From Paramicrosporidium saccamoebae KSL3 (Eukaryota; Fungi; Cryptomycota), in contig MTSL01000084.1 in assembly GCA_002794465.1 (NCBI GenBank), positions 20,187-27,927 on the forward strand: DNA of 7,741 nucleotides, given 5' to 3'. The position numbers and the translations under genes are program-made. Position 1 is the first letter of the stretch. Each line of letters starts with the position of its first letter. Shown one piece after another: positions 2 through 7,302 of this stretch. The notes under the pieces were generated by a model, which worked only from the letters and a program-made list of their open reading frames with translations, did no database searches and was not told the origin of the DNA.

Positions 2-1651
2 GATATATCAGGGTACACCTCAAGCGCCTATGAAACTGCCAAATCTTACATTCCAAGCACGGCGCCATCAGAACCTTCCACTATATCAGGCTATGCTACC
101 AGAATGTATGACTCGACTAGCTCATATTTGCGGGGAGGATCTTCAGCACCGCAAGATGGAGCGCTAGACCAGTTGTACCAGGTAGCAACTGGATATTTTG
201 ACACCATCAGCACTCATGGTCATGAAATGGCAAATCAGTTCTTGAATGCGTCCATGTCGGAGCAGGCCACTGTGGTTGCCATTGCCGCCGTTCTGGTATA
301 CGCAGCATACAATTACAAGGCCATCATCTCCTCAGTAAAGAATGCCGTTACTTCTGCCGGATCGTGGATTCTCAGAAATGTAAAGAGTGCAACCACAACC
401 ACCTCAAAGGCGATTAGCGAATTATTTGCCCTGATCAGTCTAGCCACCATCAGACTTGGACATCAAATCCTCCCCTACTCTCTTTCAGCATTCATTCCCG
501 CTTGGGTTAAGCACGGCATCTCCCTCCGTGACTATGTGGGCTTTGTAGGCCAGGCAGTCGCTACTAATCAGACCGATACGCTGGATGTGCTCATTGGCCT
601 GTCGACTACAATTATTTCCCCTAATGACTTGGTTCCGACAGCACAGTCTGCTCCATCTGACAAAACCAACCGAGTTATTCCGGAGAATGCCGCCATGAAG
701 ATTATGGAGCAAATTGTGCGTCCTTCAGTGCCGGCATTTATTGTGGACAAATTCTTGGACAGTGCCAAGCTGGGCCCGACCTATCACCTTATGACGGCCA
801 TGAAAGAGAGATGCAACAAGTTTAGCATCCTGTACCAAGCTGAAATCGCCCTGATCTTTGGAACACATGGAAGGGTTGGAGCCCTGTCGGTTTTGCGACG
901 TCAGCCAACCGAAAGGATTGAGCCACAATTTTTGACATTTTATCGCTTGTTGATCGAAGCCCTCTTTACTCCCAACAGCACTGACGCCATAGAAAAGCTG
1001 GGAAAGAGCTACGAGGGTCTTAAGCAGATCAATTTGAATATTACTCCTCTACATTTGCAGCTCTTGGACATGCTCGTTAGTAAAGGACAGTGTCTTTTGG
1101 ACAAAAATGTCAACCCCAGAGTGTGCAGAATGGCCATTCAGTACATACAGCCGATGATACAGGGAGTATCTATCGTGGGCGCCCACTCACCACACTTGGC
1201 GTACCTACAGCCCATCACAAATGCTCTCACTCGCGAGAGCTTCTTCAACGCCCAGAAAGACGACTATGCCATGCTTGCAATCGCTATACGGGCATTCCAA
1301 AATGATCAGGCTGCTCTGAAGCAGCTCAATTGCGGCCGCGATCTGGCGTGCAAGGTGTTGAAGGATCTTTCAAATAAATCTCCCTTGCCCGACCCATGTG
1401 GAACGCACAACTCTGAGACCATACTTGTTGAGAACATGCCACAATGGATTGATGCACATGCAGAGATGGACAATAGTGCCAAGGAGAAATTTGTCGCCGG
1501 TCTGATATATATGCTGGCAAATGTGCATCCCGACACCCTTCCCAAGTGGGTGTACTACAAGCAATCACTAGCAGATGCATTCAATAGCTCCATCCAAAAA
1601 CATTGCGCCGCTAGAAATCTTCAAGCTCGAGCTACAATGAACCATTTGTAA
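2..1651 (+). CDS. Hypothetical protein, 5'-truncated (at least 549 aa); probable membrane segment; no recognisable family
   Basis: The frame of the 104..1651 ORF stays open back to position 2 (DISGYTSSAYETAKSYIPSTAPSEPSTISGYATR-MYD...), so the true start is probably upstream of the window. It contains a hydrophobic stretch ATVVAIAAVLVYAAYNY. The TAA stop at 1649-1651 overlaps AATAAA at 1650-1655. Confidence 0.8.
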   Translation, partial: DISGYTSSAYETAKSYIPSTAPSEPSTISGYATRMYDSTSSYLRGGSSAPQDGALDQLYQVATGYFDTISTHGHEMANQFLNASMSEQATVVAIAAVLVYAAYNYKAIISSVKNAVTSAGSWILRNVKSATTTTSKAISELFALISLATIRLGHQILPYSLSAFIPAWVKHGISLRDYVGFVGQAVATNQTDTLDVLIGLSTTIISPNDLVPTAQSAPSDKTNRVIPENAAMKIMEQIVRPSVPAFIVDKFLDSAKLGPTYHLMTAMKERCNKFSILYQAEIALIFGTHGRVGALSVLRRQPTERIEPQFLTFYRLLIEALFTPNSTDAIEKLGKSYEGLKQINLNITPLHLQLLDMLVSKGQCLLDKNVNPRVCRMAIQYIQPMIQGVSIVGAHSPHLAYLQPITNALTRESFFNAQKDDYAMLAIAIRAFQNDQAALKQLNCGRDLACKVLKDLSNKSPLPDPCGTHNSETILVENMPQWIDAHAEMDNSAKEKFVAGLIYMLANVHPDTLPKWVYYKQSLADAFNSSIQKHCAARNLQARATMNHL

Positions 1652-1668
1652 TAAACGAACGATTGTAT

Positions 1669-1739
1669 GCAAGTTTGGTTTAGTGGTATAATTGCCGCCT
1701 GCCACGCGGTAGACCCGGGTTCGATTCCCGGAACTTGCA
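1669..1739 (+). tRNA. tRNA-Gly: tRNA-Gly, anticodon GCC, eukaryotic type (no intron, no encoded CCA)
   Basis: Acceptor stem GCAAGTT/AACTTGC plus discriminator A. D-loop AGTGGTA. Anticodon stem GCCGC/GCGGT with loop CTGCCAC (GCC at 1701-1703). T stem CCGGG/CCCGG with loop TTCGATT. Closely resembles eukaryotic tRNA-Gly(GCC). Confidence 0.97.
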
Positions 1740-1743
1740 AAAC

Positions 1744-1747
1744 TTTT
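1744..1747 (+). terminator. Possible weak Pol III terminator (T4) after tRNA-Gly
   Basis: TTTT begins 5 nt after the tRNA 3' end. With only four Ts it may be leaky in fungi. Confidence 0.4.
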
Positions 1748-1762
1748 AAAAAGGCTAAAGGC

Positions 1763-1845
1763 TTGAAGTGATGATCAAATCAAAGAGTCAAGCTCTGATG
1801 CCAAAGGCAATGCAGACAAATTTGATTACGACGGTATCTGATCAG
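1763..1845 (+). ncRNA. Box C/D snoRNA with two rRNA antisense elements (LSU target equivalent to yeast 25S U2417; SSU target equivalent to yeast 18S C1007)
   Basis: Box C GTGATGA 1768-1774, box D' CTGA 1795-1798, box D CTGA 1838-1841, and a short terminal stem TTGA(1763-66)/TCAG(1842-45). The D' guide AGAGTCAAGCT (1784-1794) is complementary to conserved LSU AGCUUGACUCU. The D guide GATTACGACGGTAT (1824-1837) is complementary to conserved SSU AUACCGUCGUAGUC (14 bp, one G-U). An internal hairpin TGCC-AAA-GGCA follows D'. Box C' is degenerate and not placed with confidence. Confidence 0.88.
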
Positions 1846-2146
1846 TCTTTTGTATGGGGGAGTATCGTCGCATAGTCGAGTCCTTTTGTGTTGCGTATTA
1901 GGGGTTTTGTATTGCATAGTGGGAAAGATGCCACGGCCCAAGCCAGACGGAAAGAAAGTTTGTCCACTGTTAATCCAACGGATCGAATCATGCAGTGACT
2001 CATTTATTATCGCTCGCTTTTAATTTAAAAGCCTGTTTCTAGTCTCACAAATGACGCATTAACAGTGCTAAACAATAAGGATACAAACCTCATTGTTTTT
2101 CATTGGTCGTCCAAGTGCCTGGCCCATCTCACTACCACTTGCCACA

Positions 2147-3125
2147 ATGGTGTGGCTGCATGACGTTGGCTCTCCAGCAGACAGTGTCGAACTTTTGCCA
2201 ACAGTCGCTGGAGAGACATTTATTTCAGTTGCTACGTATTTGTATGACGAGAGTGCCAAGACGCGGTCTGGAGAACTGCGGATAGCCAAGGTGCTCTCAG
2301 AAGACAAGCTGTGCCGCCTTCTGAAGCGCCTCTAAATGTTGTAGGGAAATGGTTGAAAAGATCCATGGTCCGGGTGTATTGGATGTCAAGTGGACTGGAG
2401 GTGCTGATAAAAGTTGCAGCGGTGTATGGGCGTGTTCGGACGGAAGCGTCTCTATGGGTGTTTTCGACCCAACCATGGAAAAGCTGCAGGTACAGTCCAC
2501 ATTTGACCTGGATGCAGAGAGCATCACAATGGCCTGCGATATGAATAATGACCTTATTGCTGCCGCAATGAGCAGTGGCGCCGTCATTCTTTGCACCAAA
2601 GCTGGTGACGTACATGCCATAAAAGGTCACTCACTGGAAGCATGGACTGTTGCATTTGACCCACACCAGCCGCATATTCTCCACTCGGGCGGCGATGATG
2701 CCAAATGGCGGGGATGGGACTTGCGTAGTAGGGATTCTGCATTCACATGTTCATGGCATACCGCTGGCGTCTGCTCCATCCAACCGCATCGAACTGATGC
2801 AAATCTCATTGTCACAGGAAGCTACGATAAACACGCCGCATCGTGGGACCGGAGGACGCTACAGCAACCATTACAAACGGTCAAGGCCAATTCGGGGGTT
2901 TGGAAACTTAGATGGCATCCAAGCGACGACATGAGAGTGCTGGCCGCTTGCATGTATGACGGATTCTACGTCTTTGACATGCAACCTGCCCACGTTTATT
3001 CCAAATATGATCCACAGGCTCTGTCGTATGGGTGTTCATGGCTCAATGCCGCTACAGCAGTGACATGTTCCTTTTACAACCACCAAGTCCAATTATGGAA
3101 GGTGGATAACTATAATGATAAATAG
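2147..3125 (+). CDS. DPH7: Diphthine methyl ester hydrolase-like WD40 protein (Dph7/Rrt2/WDR85); exons 2147-2310 and 2345-3125, 314 aa
   Basis: Splicing joins MVWLHDVGSPADSVE...VATY...RSGEL...DKL to EMVEK.... Family-typical motifs: PADSVE, LDVKW, HSLEAWTVAFD, GGDD...WDLR, HTAGVCSI, TGSYD...WDRR, GVWKLRWHP, ACMYDGF, SYGCSW, TCSFYN...LW. Confidence 0.88.
2311..2344 (+). other. Spliceosomal intron, 34 nt (DPH7)
   Basis: GTGCCG...CTAA...TGTAG. Removal restores the frame (CT+G GAA ATG) into the 2349 ORF. The donor at 2291 would not restore the frame with this acceptor. Confidence 0.75.
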
Positions 3126-3234: not shown

Positions 3235-3293
3235 GATGACTGTTTACATGAACCAAGTGTCTAGTGGCGCCGATTGGCCGATCATTCCATTCA

Positions 3294-3989
3294 ATGCAGC
3301 CACTTTACATTATTGCTCTCACATGTCTGGCACAGAGCTTCGTATGGGCAGCCGTCAAGAAACACATTAAAAACAACCCAGCGGGGGCGCTCTTCACAGG
3401 CGTATCGGGTAAGGAGATTACACAGACGGCAAAGGTGGTCAAGGCGCTGGCCAAGGGCTCTGACGTAGTATTCGTGTCCAGTCCAAAAAAGGTCAAGGAC
3501 CTGGATAAGCTTCTTACTGAGCAAAAATATCATTTATACACACTGCACAAGGTGCGAGTGGCCAGCAAGTCAGTGCTGACGCAAGAGGGTGGTGTTCTCG
3601 TGTACACACACAGCAACGGAAGAAAAATTCTACTAGACGTGGGCACCAAGACAGAGACGGAGATGCTGAAACAAGCCGAATGGCTGCGGCCGCAGGATCC
3701 CGATTACATCATGTTCCGACGGAAAGATTTCAAGAACCGCTTTCTCCATGCCGTCCATATGCCAGCAGTTTTAGATGACACAAAGATTGGAAAGGGTACC
3801 GTGACGCTGCAACTGCTAGAAATTGCCAAGATGCCCGCCCCTGAGGAAAAGATGCAGTCGGGAGAGATGGGTGTTTTCAAGCTCATTTTATGGATTTGTC
3901 TAGCAGTGGCTGTTCCGGCGATAGTTGTCATCTCTGCAGTCCTAGTGCTCCGCAGTAGGGCTAAACGGGCCGGCGAAGCAAAACTTTAG
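3294..3989 (+). CDS. Hypothetical type I membrane protein, 231 aa
   Basis: The ORF track starts at GTG 3264, but ATG 3294 gives a signal-peptide-like N-terminus (MQPLYIIALTCLAQSFVWA). A C-terminal TM helix (LILWICLAVAVPAIVVISAVLVL) is followed by the basic tail RSRAKR. AATAAA lies at 3993-3998. Confidence 0.75.
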   Translation: MQPLYIIALTCLAQSFVWAAVKKHIKNNPAGALFTGVSGKEITQTAKVVKALAKGSDVVFVSSPKKVKDLDKLLTEQKYHLYTLHKVRVASKSVLTQEGGVLVYTHSNGRKILLDVGTKTETEMLKQAEWLRPQDPDYIMFRRKDFKNRFLHAVHMPAVLDDTKIGKGTVTLQLLEIAKMPAPEEKMQSGEMGVFKLILWICLAVAVPAIVVISAVLVLRSRAKRAGEAKL

Positions 3990-4243: not shown

Positions 4244-5513
4244 CTATGCAATTTTTACAGACCATTCGTGCTGTATTTCGCCATATTGGATCATAGTGAT
4301 GGCCTCCCAGAATCGCATCGCCAGAGGACCCGCCATACTCGTGGGATCCTTCTTATCGAGGGGAATCTGCAGATCCTGTCCGTTATAATGTATTGCCTTG
4401 ATTGGCGACACCACAGCGGCCGTGCCGGCTCCAAACATTTCATGCACTCGGCCCTCGCCCAATGCACGGGTCAGCTGCTGCATGGTGACGGTGCGTTCAC
4501 TGACTTTGAATTCGTTCCAATTGCGTCCCAATTCGAGGATAGAGTCTCGTGTTACTCCTGGAAGAATGGTTCCATCCGTCAGAGCGGGGGTCACCAATTC
4601 CAGCTCATCTTGCTCGTTTGTCCAGTAAATGAAACAATTCATAGTGCCCACCTCGGTGACTTGATGATCTGGACCAAACAGCCACAGGATCTGCTGATAT
4701 CCAGCCGGTGCCACCTTGGTTTGAGGCAGAATTCCCCCGGCATAGTTACTACAAAATCAACATTAACCCCCATCCATGGCATACGCTCCAATCTTGTAGG
4801 CACCAGTGCCTCCCGGCCATGCCCGCACAAAGCGATCTTCGGCATAAAGCGACACGGGACTAAAGCCAGTTTTGTAGTACGGCCCCACAGGACAGCAAAT
4901 GACAAAGAGTAGCGCTTTGTTGGGGGGAGACACTCCCAGGGATTCCTGAGTGCCGATAATGGTCGGACGGATGTACAGCGAATAGCCGGGCTGGTCAGGG
5001 ATCCAATCACTGTCCGTCTTTACCGTCTCTTCTACAAGTGCCAACAACTCTGTTGGATCAAAAGACGGCAGCGCCAGTCTTTGTGCTGAATTAAGTAGCC
5101 GCTGCATGTTGAGCTCTGGACGGAACAATCGGACAGCGCCGCTGCGGTCCTTGTACGCCTTTAACCCCTCAAAACATTCAATGGCATAATGGAGCACTGA
5201 AGCCGATGGTGGCAGTGAGAGATTGCCGTACGGCTGGATGAGCGGGGTTGCCCAGCCCTGTTCACGCGTCCATTCGCAGGTCAACATGTGGTCAGTGAAA
5301 GTGTGTCCAAACTGCAGTTCTGCCAGCGCAACCCTTTCTCGTCGCGTCTTGGTCAACTCTACCCGCAGTCGTTTGTGCTACGGAGCTGTCGACAGTAAAA
5401 AGTATTACCTTGAGGGGCAATCCCGCTGACGGCTCATTGATTTGTGTTGGCATCGATGGTATTCGGCGAGAGGAAAAGTGACGACAAATAAGCCCCACAA
5501 CCCGTGAGACCAT
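4244..5513 (-). CDS. BAT1: Branched-chain amino acid aminotransferase (PLP fold IV), probably mitochondrial; exons 5513-5409, 5377-4785 and 4748-4244, 400 aa
   Basis: Motifs FGHTFTDHML, YAIECFEGLKAY, LFRPELNMQRL, YIRPT, RAWPGGTGAYKIGANY (catalytic Lys; GANY formed only after splicing), GYQQILWLFG, EVGTMN, ILPGVTRDS and EMFGAGTAAVVSP. The N-terminus MVSRVVGLICRHFSSRR resembles a presequence. BAT1 versus BAT2 orthology cannot be resolved here. Confidence 0.95.
4749..4784 (-). other. Spliceosomal intron, 36 nt (BCAT intron 2)
   Basis: GTATGC...TTAA...TTTTGTAG. It contains an in-frame TAA, and removal gives the conserved KIGANY motif. Confidence 0.93.
5378..5408 (-). other. Spliceosomal intron, 31 nt (BCAT intron 1)
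   Basis: GTAATA...CCGTAG, phase 0. It joins ...LPLK to HKRLRVELTKT... and so links the ATG at 5513 to the conserved domain. Confidence 0.8.
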
Positions 5514-5939: not shown

Positions 5940-7302
5940 ATGACAAAGGGCAAATACACCATTGATGACGCCCTCGAGGCCGTCGGCTTTGGACGTTTCC
6001 AATGGATGCTTCTTGTGCTCTCGGGCATTGGTTTCTTTGCCACCACCGTCGAGCTCATTTCCGTATCACTTTTGCGTGCGCCTCTGCGAGAGCAATGGCC
6101 TGCCGTGGACGACAAACGTTTTGCATATCTCATGTCAGCGACGTTTGCGGGCGAATTGTTGGGCGGGTTGGCGTGGGGAGCGGTGAGTGATCGCATGGGA
6201 AGACGGGCCACCTTTGCAGGCACCGCTCTTATGGCTGCCGTATTCGGCATGTTGGGCTCGGTGGTTCCGTGTTTTTACAGCTTTGCTATCACTCGTTTCG
6301 GCCTTGGTTTTGCCATTGGCGGCAGTTTGGCCATTGATTTTGTCTATTTTGTGGAATTTGTGCCTGCCACCTCTCGTGGATTCCGTACCACCTTTATCAT
6401 CCTTCTGGGGATCATGGCATGTATGCAGTTTCTTTTTATAATGCACTGTAGTCTTTTACGCCTCTCTGGTGGGCTGGCTGACTTTGCCCGTCTGGCGATA
6501 TTTCGTCTTTCTTTGCGGATTGCCTTATGGCTTGCTGTTTCTGGGACGTCTCGCCTGGCGCTGGGAATCCCCGCGTTTCCTTATGGCTCGAGGACGCACT
6601 GCCGAGGCCACCGAAGTGCTTCGACAGATTGCCAAACAAAACGGCACTGTTCTTCCAGAGGGCGAGTTGGAACCGTTGCAGAACATTTCCACCTCCGCTC
6701 CCGGATTGGCGTCCATTGCCTCGGCTGGGATGATTCGCCCCACCATTACCGTCAGCATCCTCTTCTTCTTCCAGACCTTTTCCTACTATGGTCTCACCAT
6801 TTGGCTGCGCAGTTTTGCTGCCCAACGAGGCATCCCCAATTTCAATCCCATGACTGCCTTTCTCGTCATTGGTCTCTCCGAGCTTCCCGGTCTCGCCCTG
6901 ACTACTCTCCTCATTGAACGTGCCGGTCGCCGTCCCGTTCTCCTTCTCAACTTTATTGGTAGTGCTCTTTGTAGTGCAATGCTGTTGTTGGTCACCACCC
7001 AAGCTGGCTTCCTGGCCGTCACCTGTGCATCGTACTTTTTCATTGTCGGCTGTTGGGCTGCCATCTATGTCTCCACTCCCGAAGTGTTCCCCACGACATG
7101 TCGTGCCAGTGCCTTTGCCGTTGCCGGCGCCTGTGGCAAACTCGCCGGTATGACCTCTCCGCATCTATTTGGACATTTGTTGGACATTAATGCGCCGTTT
7201 GGAACAATCGTGGCATGTGTCTCGGGTGGCTTCCTGATTGCTGCCCTAACCAGCGCCCTGCTCATGGTGGAAACTACTGGAAGACGTCTCCGAGACAATT
7301 AA
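5940..7302 (+). CDS. Major facilitator superfamily transporter, SVOP/SV2-like; exons 5940-6420 and 6452-7302, 443 aa
   Basis: N-terminal IDDALEAVGFGRFQW, motif A SDRMGRR, TRFGLGFAIGG, EFVP...RG, WRY, ESPRFL, ERAGRR and EVFPTTCRASA, with about 12 hydrophobic segments. Substrate cannot be inferred. Confidence 0.92.
6421..6451 (+). other. Spliceosomal intron, 31 nt (MFS gene)
   Basis: GTATGC...CTGTAG. Removal joins ...GIMA to FFYASLVGWLTLPVWRY in the frame of the 6469 ORF. Confidence 0.92.

Follow-up and report, generated by a model that had tools for sequence, protein, structure and literature searches.

A complete tRNA-Gly(GCC) gene, followed on the same strand by a box C/D small nucleolar RNA (snoRNA) gene, was found in a 7,741-nucleotide (nt) stretch of the Paramicrosporidium saccamoebae KSL3 genome (contig MTSL01000084.1; the whole stretch is hereafter the window), and the same pair is present in seven further loci of uncultured relatives. 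We consider it moderately probable that the snoRNA is a product of RNA polymerase III (Pol III) reading through from the tRNA promoter past a leaky terminator, with RNase Z and exonucleases releasing the snoRNA from the joint transcript. The principle is not new, as yeast, worms and flies are already known to have snoRNAs that Pol III makes behind a tRNA-like leader (PMC2527325). What is new here is a complete tRNA-snoRNA tandem in fungi, a conserved minimal terminator inside it, and a syntenic intermediate that links two known architectures.

Anatomy and conservation of the tRNA-snoRNA pair

The tRNA gene lies at 1669-1739 on the plus strand of the window and is of the nuclear tRNA-Gly(GCC) type: it has the cloverleaf and the GCC anticodon, contains an A box (TGGTTTAGTGGT, 1676-1687, plus strand) and a B box (GGTTCGATTCC, 1718-1728, plus strand), and does not encode CCA. 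It was recognized by both Rfam (tRNA model, 65.3 bits, E 7e-13) and ARAGORN, which bears out the complete tRNA-Gly(GCC) called at these positions in the first-pass annotation of this DNA. A trailer and spacer (1740-1762, plus strand) come next, made up of AAAC, a run of four T residues (T4, 1744-1747) and an A-rich stretch, and 23 nt separate the tRNA end from the start of the Rfam snoRNA match at 1763.

The snoRNA occupies about 1760-1847 of the plus strand and carries two guides; it was identified from Rfam, complementarity to ribosomal DNA (rDNA), conservation and covariation. In 5' to 3' order it comprises a C box (GTGATGA, 1768-1774), a D' guide directed to 28S (AGAGTCAAGCT, 1784-1794), a D' box (CTGA, 1795-1798), an internal hairpin (1800-1808), a C' box (TGCAGA, 1811-1816), a D guide directed to 18S (TACGACGGTAT, 1827-1837) and a D box (CTGA, 1838-1841), all on the plus strand and enclosed by a terminal stem (about 1760-1766 paired with 1842-1847). 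The general features of the box C/D class are thus present, namely a C box near the 5' end, a D box near the 3' end, a terminal stem, and guides of at least 10 nt at D and D'. Over 11 nt each guide is perfectly Watson-Crick complementary to rDNA, and each directly abuts its box, D or D'. Their complements were checked against the 18S-like and 28S-like rDNA of locus L056 (L numbers are our handles for the fetched loci); the D guide target, GATCAGATACCGTCGTAGTC, is present in many 18S fragments among these loci, and the D' guide target, CCCTGTTGAGCTTGACTCTAG, in the 28S of L056. By the box-plus-five rule, the 18S target nucleotide is the second C of GAUACCG, that is, GAUAC[C]GUCG, and the 28S target nucleotide is the second U of AGCUUGAC, that is, AGCU[U]GACUCU. 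We take these sites to be the equivalents of yeast 18S-Cm1007 (snR79) and 25S-Um2417 (snR66), respectively. A 12-nt match within the coding region of a branched-chain aminotransferase gene (window 4694) was judged to be due to chance, and a crude search of about 80 kb of clade loci found no other snoRNAs.

Relatives were gathered through homologues of two neighbouring genes, DPH7 and the open reading frame (ORF) ORF515, which yielded syntenic contigs, and through one metagenome scan with the snoRNA pattern. The same tRNA-Gly(GCC)-snoRNA pair was recovered in L001, L002, L003, L007, L078, L079 and L080, giving eight loci with the window. In the six loci that carry DPH7, the identity of its product to that of the window ranges from 80% (L001) down to 51% (L003). 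The tRNA copies of L001 and L007 are identical or compensated, L007 having a compensatory change in the acceptor stem, and only the 3' half of the tRNA is included in the contigs of L002, L003, L078, L079 and L080. Both snoRNA guides are invariant across the eight loci. The boxes are invariant as well, except for the D' box of L007, L079 and L080 (three of the eight loci), which reads CCTA in place of CTGA next to an intact D' guide. The terminal stem and the internal hairpin covary, their sequences changing while pairing is kept. In the global RNAalifold fold the guide regions are paired, which does not correspond to the biological structure, and only these two helices of it were used. With perfect rDNA guides abutting D and D', conservation in eight genomes and covarying stems, the snoRNA can be regarded as genuine, far beyond chance, and as belonging to the snR79/snoR14 type; both genes of the pair are taken to be real and functional. 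These data also bear out the earlier call that a box C/D snoRNA follows the tRNA on its strand after about 23 nt. The best Rfam snoRNA match of the window RNA is snoR14 at 24.1 bits, below the gathering threshold of 40, and the best snR79 scores among related orthologues are 24-28 bits against a threshold of 55. These sub-threshold scores lower the case for membership in a named family and leave the box C/D class assignment unaffected, because short snoRNA models are sequence-specific.

The surroundings of the pair vary. In the window and L001 it lies between ORF515 and DPH7, both on the plus strand, and in L002, L003, L078 and L007 a convergent PPP4R2-like gene is found next to the snoRNA. 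L007 has a divergent BCCIP homologue upstream, and PPP4R2 and then Spo11 downstream. Since the flanking genes differ among the loci, the tRNA is the sole constant same-strand upstream neighbour of the snoRNA, which has neither a host gene nor an intron to lie in, in agreement with the initial view that the snoRNA is not intronic. A location in an intron or untranslated region (UTR) of DPH7 was rejected on the same ground, the downstream neighbour being different among loci. Neither the tRNA nor the snoRNA was found beside DPH7 in L004, L074-L077, L081 (whose contig stops too soon to be informative) or the chytrid Terramyces (L082); thus, the pair is not tied to DPH7. The first-pass annotation had proposed tRNA-snoRNA adjacency in related genomes as a check on the unit, and the pair is indeed kept in eight divergent genomes with different flanks. 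No second tRNA was found in the clade loci fetched, and scans of genome-contig and viral-contig collections with the tRNA 3' half and the snoRNA gave no match.

Outside the clade, none of 29 non-redundant orthologues of the dual-guide snoRNA is preceded by a tRNA. Most of them were called Dikarya-like on the basis of a shared upstream hairpin. Located 25-40 nt before the C box, this covarying hairpin (GCTTG-GTCGAA-CAAGC, with a GTCNNA loop) is followed by CAGRYTC and occurs, among others, in L006, L008, L010, L013, L014, L016, L017 and L019; farther upstream an apparent D-box end of another snoRNA is seen. This hairpin might serve to direct processing of a polycistronic precursor, and its loop bears a faint likeness to a T-loop or B box one base short.

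Five independent Logan contigs start at nearly the same base within tRNA-Gly (L002:1-29, L003:1-29, L078:1-29, L079:1-28 and L080:1-30), and their assemblies therefore appear to break at a repeated tRNA-Gly(GCC) gene. We infer that tRNA-Gly(GCC) is multicopy, with the snoRNA behind one copy only and different trailers behind the others. In a separate observation, L035 (PVBE011072251.1, 5902 nt) has 11 ARAGORN tRNA calls and, at one end, a fragment of 18S; it represents a chimeric assembly or else a tRNA array beside the rDNA of an unrelated eukaryote.

Proposed read-through transcription and its alternatives

The spacer measures 17-43 nt from the tRNA end to the C box across the eight loci, or about 12-37 nt to the likely 5' end of the snoRNA. 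As had been argued from the window, where 23 nt lie between the two same-strand genes, this leaves no room for a separate snoRNA promoter. A conserved TTTTAA was considered as a TATA-type snoRNA promoter and rejected, its distance to the snoRNA 5' end being variable (about 9-19 nt) and too short. Except for the T-run after the tRNA, the spacers cannot be aligned. In the window, the 7-mer AAAGGCT is duplicated in tandem (1750-1756 and 1757-1763), has no counterpart in L001, adds about 10 nt to the spacer and doubles the sequence that flanks the snoRNA terminal stem on its 5' side; spacer length therefore seems free to vary. The spacer of L007 (L007:1895-1917) contains a perfect 6-bp hairpin, AATTGG-TTGC-CCAATT, just past T4-G-T3, with no equivalent in the other loci.

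A more informative locus is L029, where an orthologous snoRNA with a preceding promoter-box element (L029:693-850, minus strand; flanking genes at L029:304-645 and 870-1760) is flanked, as in L007, by homologues of BCCIP (divergent) and PPP4R2 (convergent). The proteins are here far more diverged, those of L029 and L007 sharing 25% identity for BCCIP (E 2e-15) and 29% for PPP4R2 (E 3e-7). No tRNA could be identified in the approximately 70 nt at the tRNA position, either by Rfam (isolated stretch, E up to 10) or by ARAGORN (relaxed thresholds). Instead, this segment has a T-arm that is perfect and includes a consensus B box (ACAGGTTCGATCCTGT; the box itself reads GGTTCGATCC), an A-box-like TAGTTCAACTGG and an anticodon-arm stump with a 4-nt loop; the acceptor stem is absent. 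About 10 nt without a T-run separate the element from the snoRNA, and a T4 run occurs 22 nt after it. Because of its motifs and syntenic position, the element can be read as a decayed tRNA that retains just its promoter boxes. Retention of the boxes together with loss of the terminator would be expected if the tRNA drives the snoRNA, and would be hard to account for otherwise.

On the proposed model, TFIIIC would bind the A and B boxes of tRNA-Gly(GCC) and Pol III would initiate just upstream of the tRNA. Most polymerases would stop at the T-run 3-6 nt past the acceptor stem and yield an ordinary pre-tRNA-Gly, and a minority would pass this minimal terminator, transcribe the snoRNA and stop at a following T-run. 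RNase Z would cleave after the tRNA discriminator base, snoRNP proteins would assemble on the C/D kink-turn, and exonucleases would trim away the spacer (12-37 nt) together with the 3' tail. Once mature, the snoRNA is predicted to guide 2'-O-methylation at one 18S site, GAUAC[C]GUCG, and one 28S site, AGCU[U]GACUCU. The T4 at 1744-1747 would be the primary Pol III terminator of the tRNA, and probably a leaky one. In favour of read-through, the run never exceeds T5 in any of the eight loci. The shortest run that serves as a terminator in S. cerevisiae is T5; efficient termination takes T6, and T4 stays weak even where structure assists it (PMC9278858). The initial argument that T4 is the only intervening terminator and shorter than yeasts generally need holds to this extent, namely that the T4 is present and weak by yeast data. 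The stronger form, that T4 is too weak to terminate, is inconsistent, the same T4 length having been invoked as a functional terminator after the snoRNA.

Several points weigh against read-through. First, in each of the eight loci a T4 or T5 starts 3-6 nt past the tRNA discriminator base, amid otherwise differing bases: the trailers read AAAC-T4-AAAAAGG (window), AAAC-T4-AAGG (L001), AATG-T4-AAATCG (L002), AAA-T5-AATGG (L003 and L078), ATATAA-T4-GTTT (L007), TTAAA-T4-GAG (L079) and AACA-T4-AGGG (L080). Such a run would arise by chance with a frequency of about 0.05 per lineage and is found in every locus, and is therefore under selection. It occupies the canonical position of a primary tRNA terminator, so the tRNA looks like a unit with its own terminator. 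The absence of a Pol III terminator between the genes, which marks the plant-type unit, is accordingly not seen in any of the eight loci. Vertebrates terminate efficiently at T4, and if the present lineage does so too, read-through would be small. Second, a folded acceptor stem within 7 nt helps short T-tracts to release Pol III, and the T4/T5 runs here, followed by purines and within 7 nt of the acceptor stem, are arranged in the way that renders short T-tracts effective (PMC9278858). The established Pol III fusions, such as tandem tDNAs and Yarrowia tRNA-5S, carry a terminator behind the second gene only (PMC2566860). Third, conserved adjacency alone is weak evidence of coupling, because rearrangements would seldom fall within a spacer as short as 12-37 nt. 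Finally, the A and B boxes of L029 are about 21 nt apart, closer than in tRNAs, and L029 is a single sequence from which constraint on the boxes is not measurable.

The T-runs downstream of the snoRNA bear on both sides. Three T4 runs on the plus strand of the window (1848-1851, 1884-1887 and 1905-1908) are candidate secondary or fail-safe Pol III terminators, the first of them abutting the snoRNA terminal stem. Over the 100 nt past the D box, the eight loci together contain 12 sense runs of T4 or longer against 3.1 expected from the whole loci (Poisson 1e-4), and 12 T-runs against 3 A-runs (binomial 0.035). This enrichment is suggestive in that it fits the clustered secondary T-tracts behind yeast tRNA genes (PMC9278858). 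A T4 or longer run occurs no more than 20 nt past the D box in five of the eight clade loci and in two of the 29 tRNA-less orthologues (Fisher p = 0.002), a contrast that depends on the threshold and is weak, since p rises to 0.23 at a limit of 25 nt. On the other hand, L003, L078 and L080 have no T4 or longer run within 45 nt after the snoRNA. The earlier statement that the snoRNA ends at a T4 thus holds for the window and does not extend to the clade, where a close run was found in only five of the eight loci.

One alternative, which we regard as unlikely yet in need of weighing, is that the two genes are independent neighbours: the tRNA would end at its own T4/T5, the snoRNA would be a transcript that RNA polymerase II (Pol II) makes from a compact or neighbouring promoter, and genome compactness would keep them adjacent. 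The canonical placement of the T-run and the lack of a universal T-run behind the snoRNA are what this alternative predicts, and most fungal snoRNAs are made by Pol II (PMC2780460). A bidirectional Pol II promoter shared with BCCIP is conceivable for L007 and L029: in L029 about 90 nt lie between the start codon of BCCIP and the snoRNA, and in L007 the BCCIP ORF ends about 390 nt upstream of it. However, nothing upstream of the snoRNA is conserved apart from the tRNA and the snoRNA itself, and the promoter would have to sit inside a tRNA gene occupied by TFIIIC and TFIIIB. Furthermore, the window and L001 have no divergent upstream gene, just a same-strand ORF that ends 17 nt before the tRNA, and the perfect B-box hairpin in the dead tRNA of L029, together with its lost T-run, would be left unexplained.

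That same-strand ORF introduces a second, improbable alternative, in which a Pol II precursor, the 3' region of the ORF515 mRNA, runs through the tRNA and the snoRNA, and RNase P and RNase Z excise the tRNA. On this reading, the excision would both form the mRNA 3' end and free the snoRNA. Only 17 nt separate the ORF515 stop codon from the tRNA, which is on the same strand, both in the window (1649-1668) and in L001 (L001:2292-2311), and the upstream promoter zone of the tRNA therefore overlaps the end of ORF515. In both loci the 3' UTR of the ORF515 mRNA must at least abut the tRNA, and an overlap of this UTR and its poly(A) site with the tRNA gene and the TFIIIB zone is unavoidable; RNase P cleavage or a roadblock are possibilities for how the mRNA 3' end forms. 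Dicistronic tRNA-mRNA transcripts have been reported in plants (bioRxiv 10.1101/2020.04.13.039131). In L007 and L029, though, the upstream gene is divergent, so that no same-strand Pol II gene feeds the unit, and the conserved T-run is given no role. Active tRNA genes block Pol II, which also counts against such a precursor. A functionless chance juxtaposition of the tRNA with a snoRNA-like sequence or pseudogene would agree with the sub-gathering Rfam scores, but it is very improbable given that both guides, the boxes and the covarying stems are kept in eight or nine genomes while the flanks diverge.

It is possible, and is proposed here tentatively, that a clade of uncultured early-diverging fungi keeps a two-stage series at one syntenic locus: tRNA-Gly(GCC) with a minimal T4/T5 leaking into the snoRNA, and in L029 a bare A/B-box leader from which the terminator has been lost. 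Such a series, if true, would be the first tRNA-driven snoRNA in fungi, would provide comparative evidence for a tRNA origin of snR52/UM2-type Pol III snoRNA promoters, and would mean that terminator strength sets the ratio of tRNA to snoRNA output. A real unit would extend tRNA-driven snoRNA expression to early-diverging fungi, with the same isoacceptor as in plant and Yarrowia fusions, and its conserved weak internal terminator would offer a possible control of the ratio between two products of a single Pol III promoter; in combination with L029 it would open a comparative route to the origin of the tRNA-like Pol III leaders of snR52 and UM2. If there is no unit, the pair is merely a tightly packed pair of small-RNA genes in a compact genome.

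Neighbouring genes

ORF515 (104-1651, plus strand), taken from the ORF list, encodes 515 amino acids and is a lineage-restricted orphan. Its single homologue among 5.8 billion clustered proteins is that of L001 (a JGI metagenome), at 76% identity; no exact match was on record, and a Pfam search gave nothing above the curated cut-off and one weak sub-threshold match. DPH7 (about 2093-3125, plus strand), a WD40 protein of diphthamide biosynthesis, starts about 300 nt after the snoRNA and is a neighbour, not a host gene; its best named match is from a chytrid, at only 36% identity. Farther along are genes for a membrane protein (3264-3989, plus strand), the branched-chain aminotransferase (BCAT; 4244-5356, minus strand), which has a short intron, and an MFS transporter (5940-7302, plus strand). 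The best named matches of BCAT are from Chytridiomycota (60-63% identity), then from Zoopagomycota and Mucoromycota. The window is eukaryotic and compact, and by these matches comes from an early-diverging, chytrid-like fungus. This agrees with its initial description as part of a fungal-like genome, Chytridiomycota being nearest for BCAT.

Comparison with known systems

In the literature consulted, complete transcription units of a tRNA and a snoRNA are described for plants alone (PMC2780460, PMC2566860); surveys of fungi found tRNA-5S and tRNA-RUF70 fusions and no tRNA-snoRNA (PMC2566860). The first-pass annotation knew of no tRNA-driven snoRNA in fungi or their relatives. This stands for complete units but is too broad for tRNA-like leaders, since Pol III snoRNAs with such leaders are known as yeast snR52, C. 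elegans UM2 and in Drosophila (PMC2527325).

The plant tRNA-Gly(GCC)-snoR43 unit, reported by Kruszka et al. in 2003, like the window has a complete tRNA-Gly(GCC) on the same strand directly before a box C/D snoRNA without space for a promoter of its own, and RNase Z is the expected processing enzyme in both (PMC2566860, PMC1904278, PMC2780460). The poplar snoRNA comes directly after tRNA nucleotide 73 (PMC2566860), whereas the clade loci have a T4/T5 within a spacer of 12-37 nt. The plant unit is multicopy, with 12 copies in Arabidopsis, and its precursor has been demonstrated, whereas the window unit is found at one locus and its joint precursor is a prediction. The partner is snoR43 in plants and an snR79/snoR14-type snoRNA in the window. 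In the plant tRNA-snoRNA unit, a terminator is known only after the snoRNA. The internal terminator, the different snoRNA and the single locus imply that the window unit arose independently of the plant tRNA-snoR43 family and is not a member of it.

For the snoRNA itself, the closest known relatives are yeast snR79 and plant snoR14 with the Dikarya orthologues, which share with the window a D guide of the CUACGACGGUAUCUGA type against the GAUACCGUCGUAG site of 18S; most fungal orthologues also share the D' guide against the AGCUUGACUCU site of 28S. Outside the clade the orthologues are without a tRNA; a length of 90-99 nt and the different conserved hairpin upstream are shared by most of them.

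A fungal precedent for a tRNA gene that drives a downstream non-tRNA RNA by Pol III is provided by the tRNA-5S and tRNA-Trp-RUF70 fusions of Yarrowia lipolytica (PMC2566860). tDNA-Gly(GCC) is the commonest partner there, matching the isoacceptor of the window, and Acker et al. noted tRNA-Gly(GCC) as recurrent in Pol III fusions (PMC2566860). In contrast with the window, the second RNA is 5S or RUF70 and not a snoRNA, and the spacer is 4-7 nt, except in one gene (17 nt, a triple fusion), and lacks a T-tract (PMC2566860). Yarrowia is a hemiascomycete, whereas an early-diverging fungus is considered here.

Finally, snR52 and UM2 (PMC2527325, PMC5356446) resemble the proposed unit in that a C/D snoRNA lies downstream of a type-2 promoter for Pol III, that the leader is cut away post-transcriptionally, and that termination is at T-runs. 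The window differs from them in its full tRNA gene with its own terminator in place of a degenerate leader, and from snR52 also in its snoRNA targets. The UM2 loci were proposed by their authors to be remnants of tRNA-snoRNA genes (PMC2527325). The defining traits of this type, a non-tRNA leader with A and B boxes and no intervening T-run, are lacking in the window, which has a complete tRNA and a T4, and are both present in L029, whose architecture looks exactly like the snR52/UM2 type.

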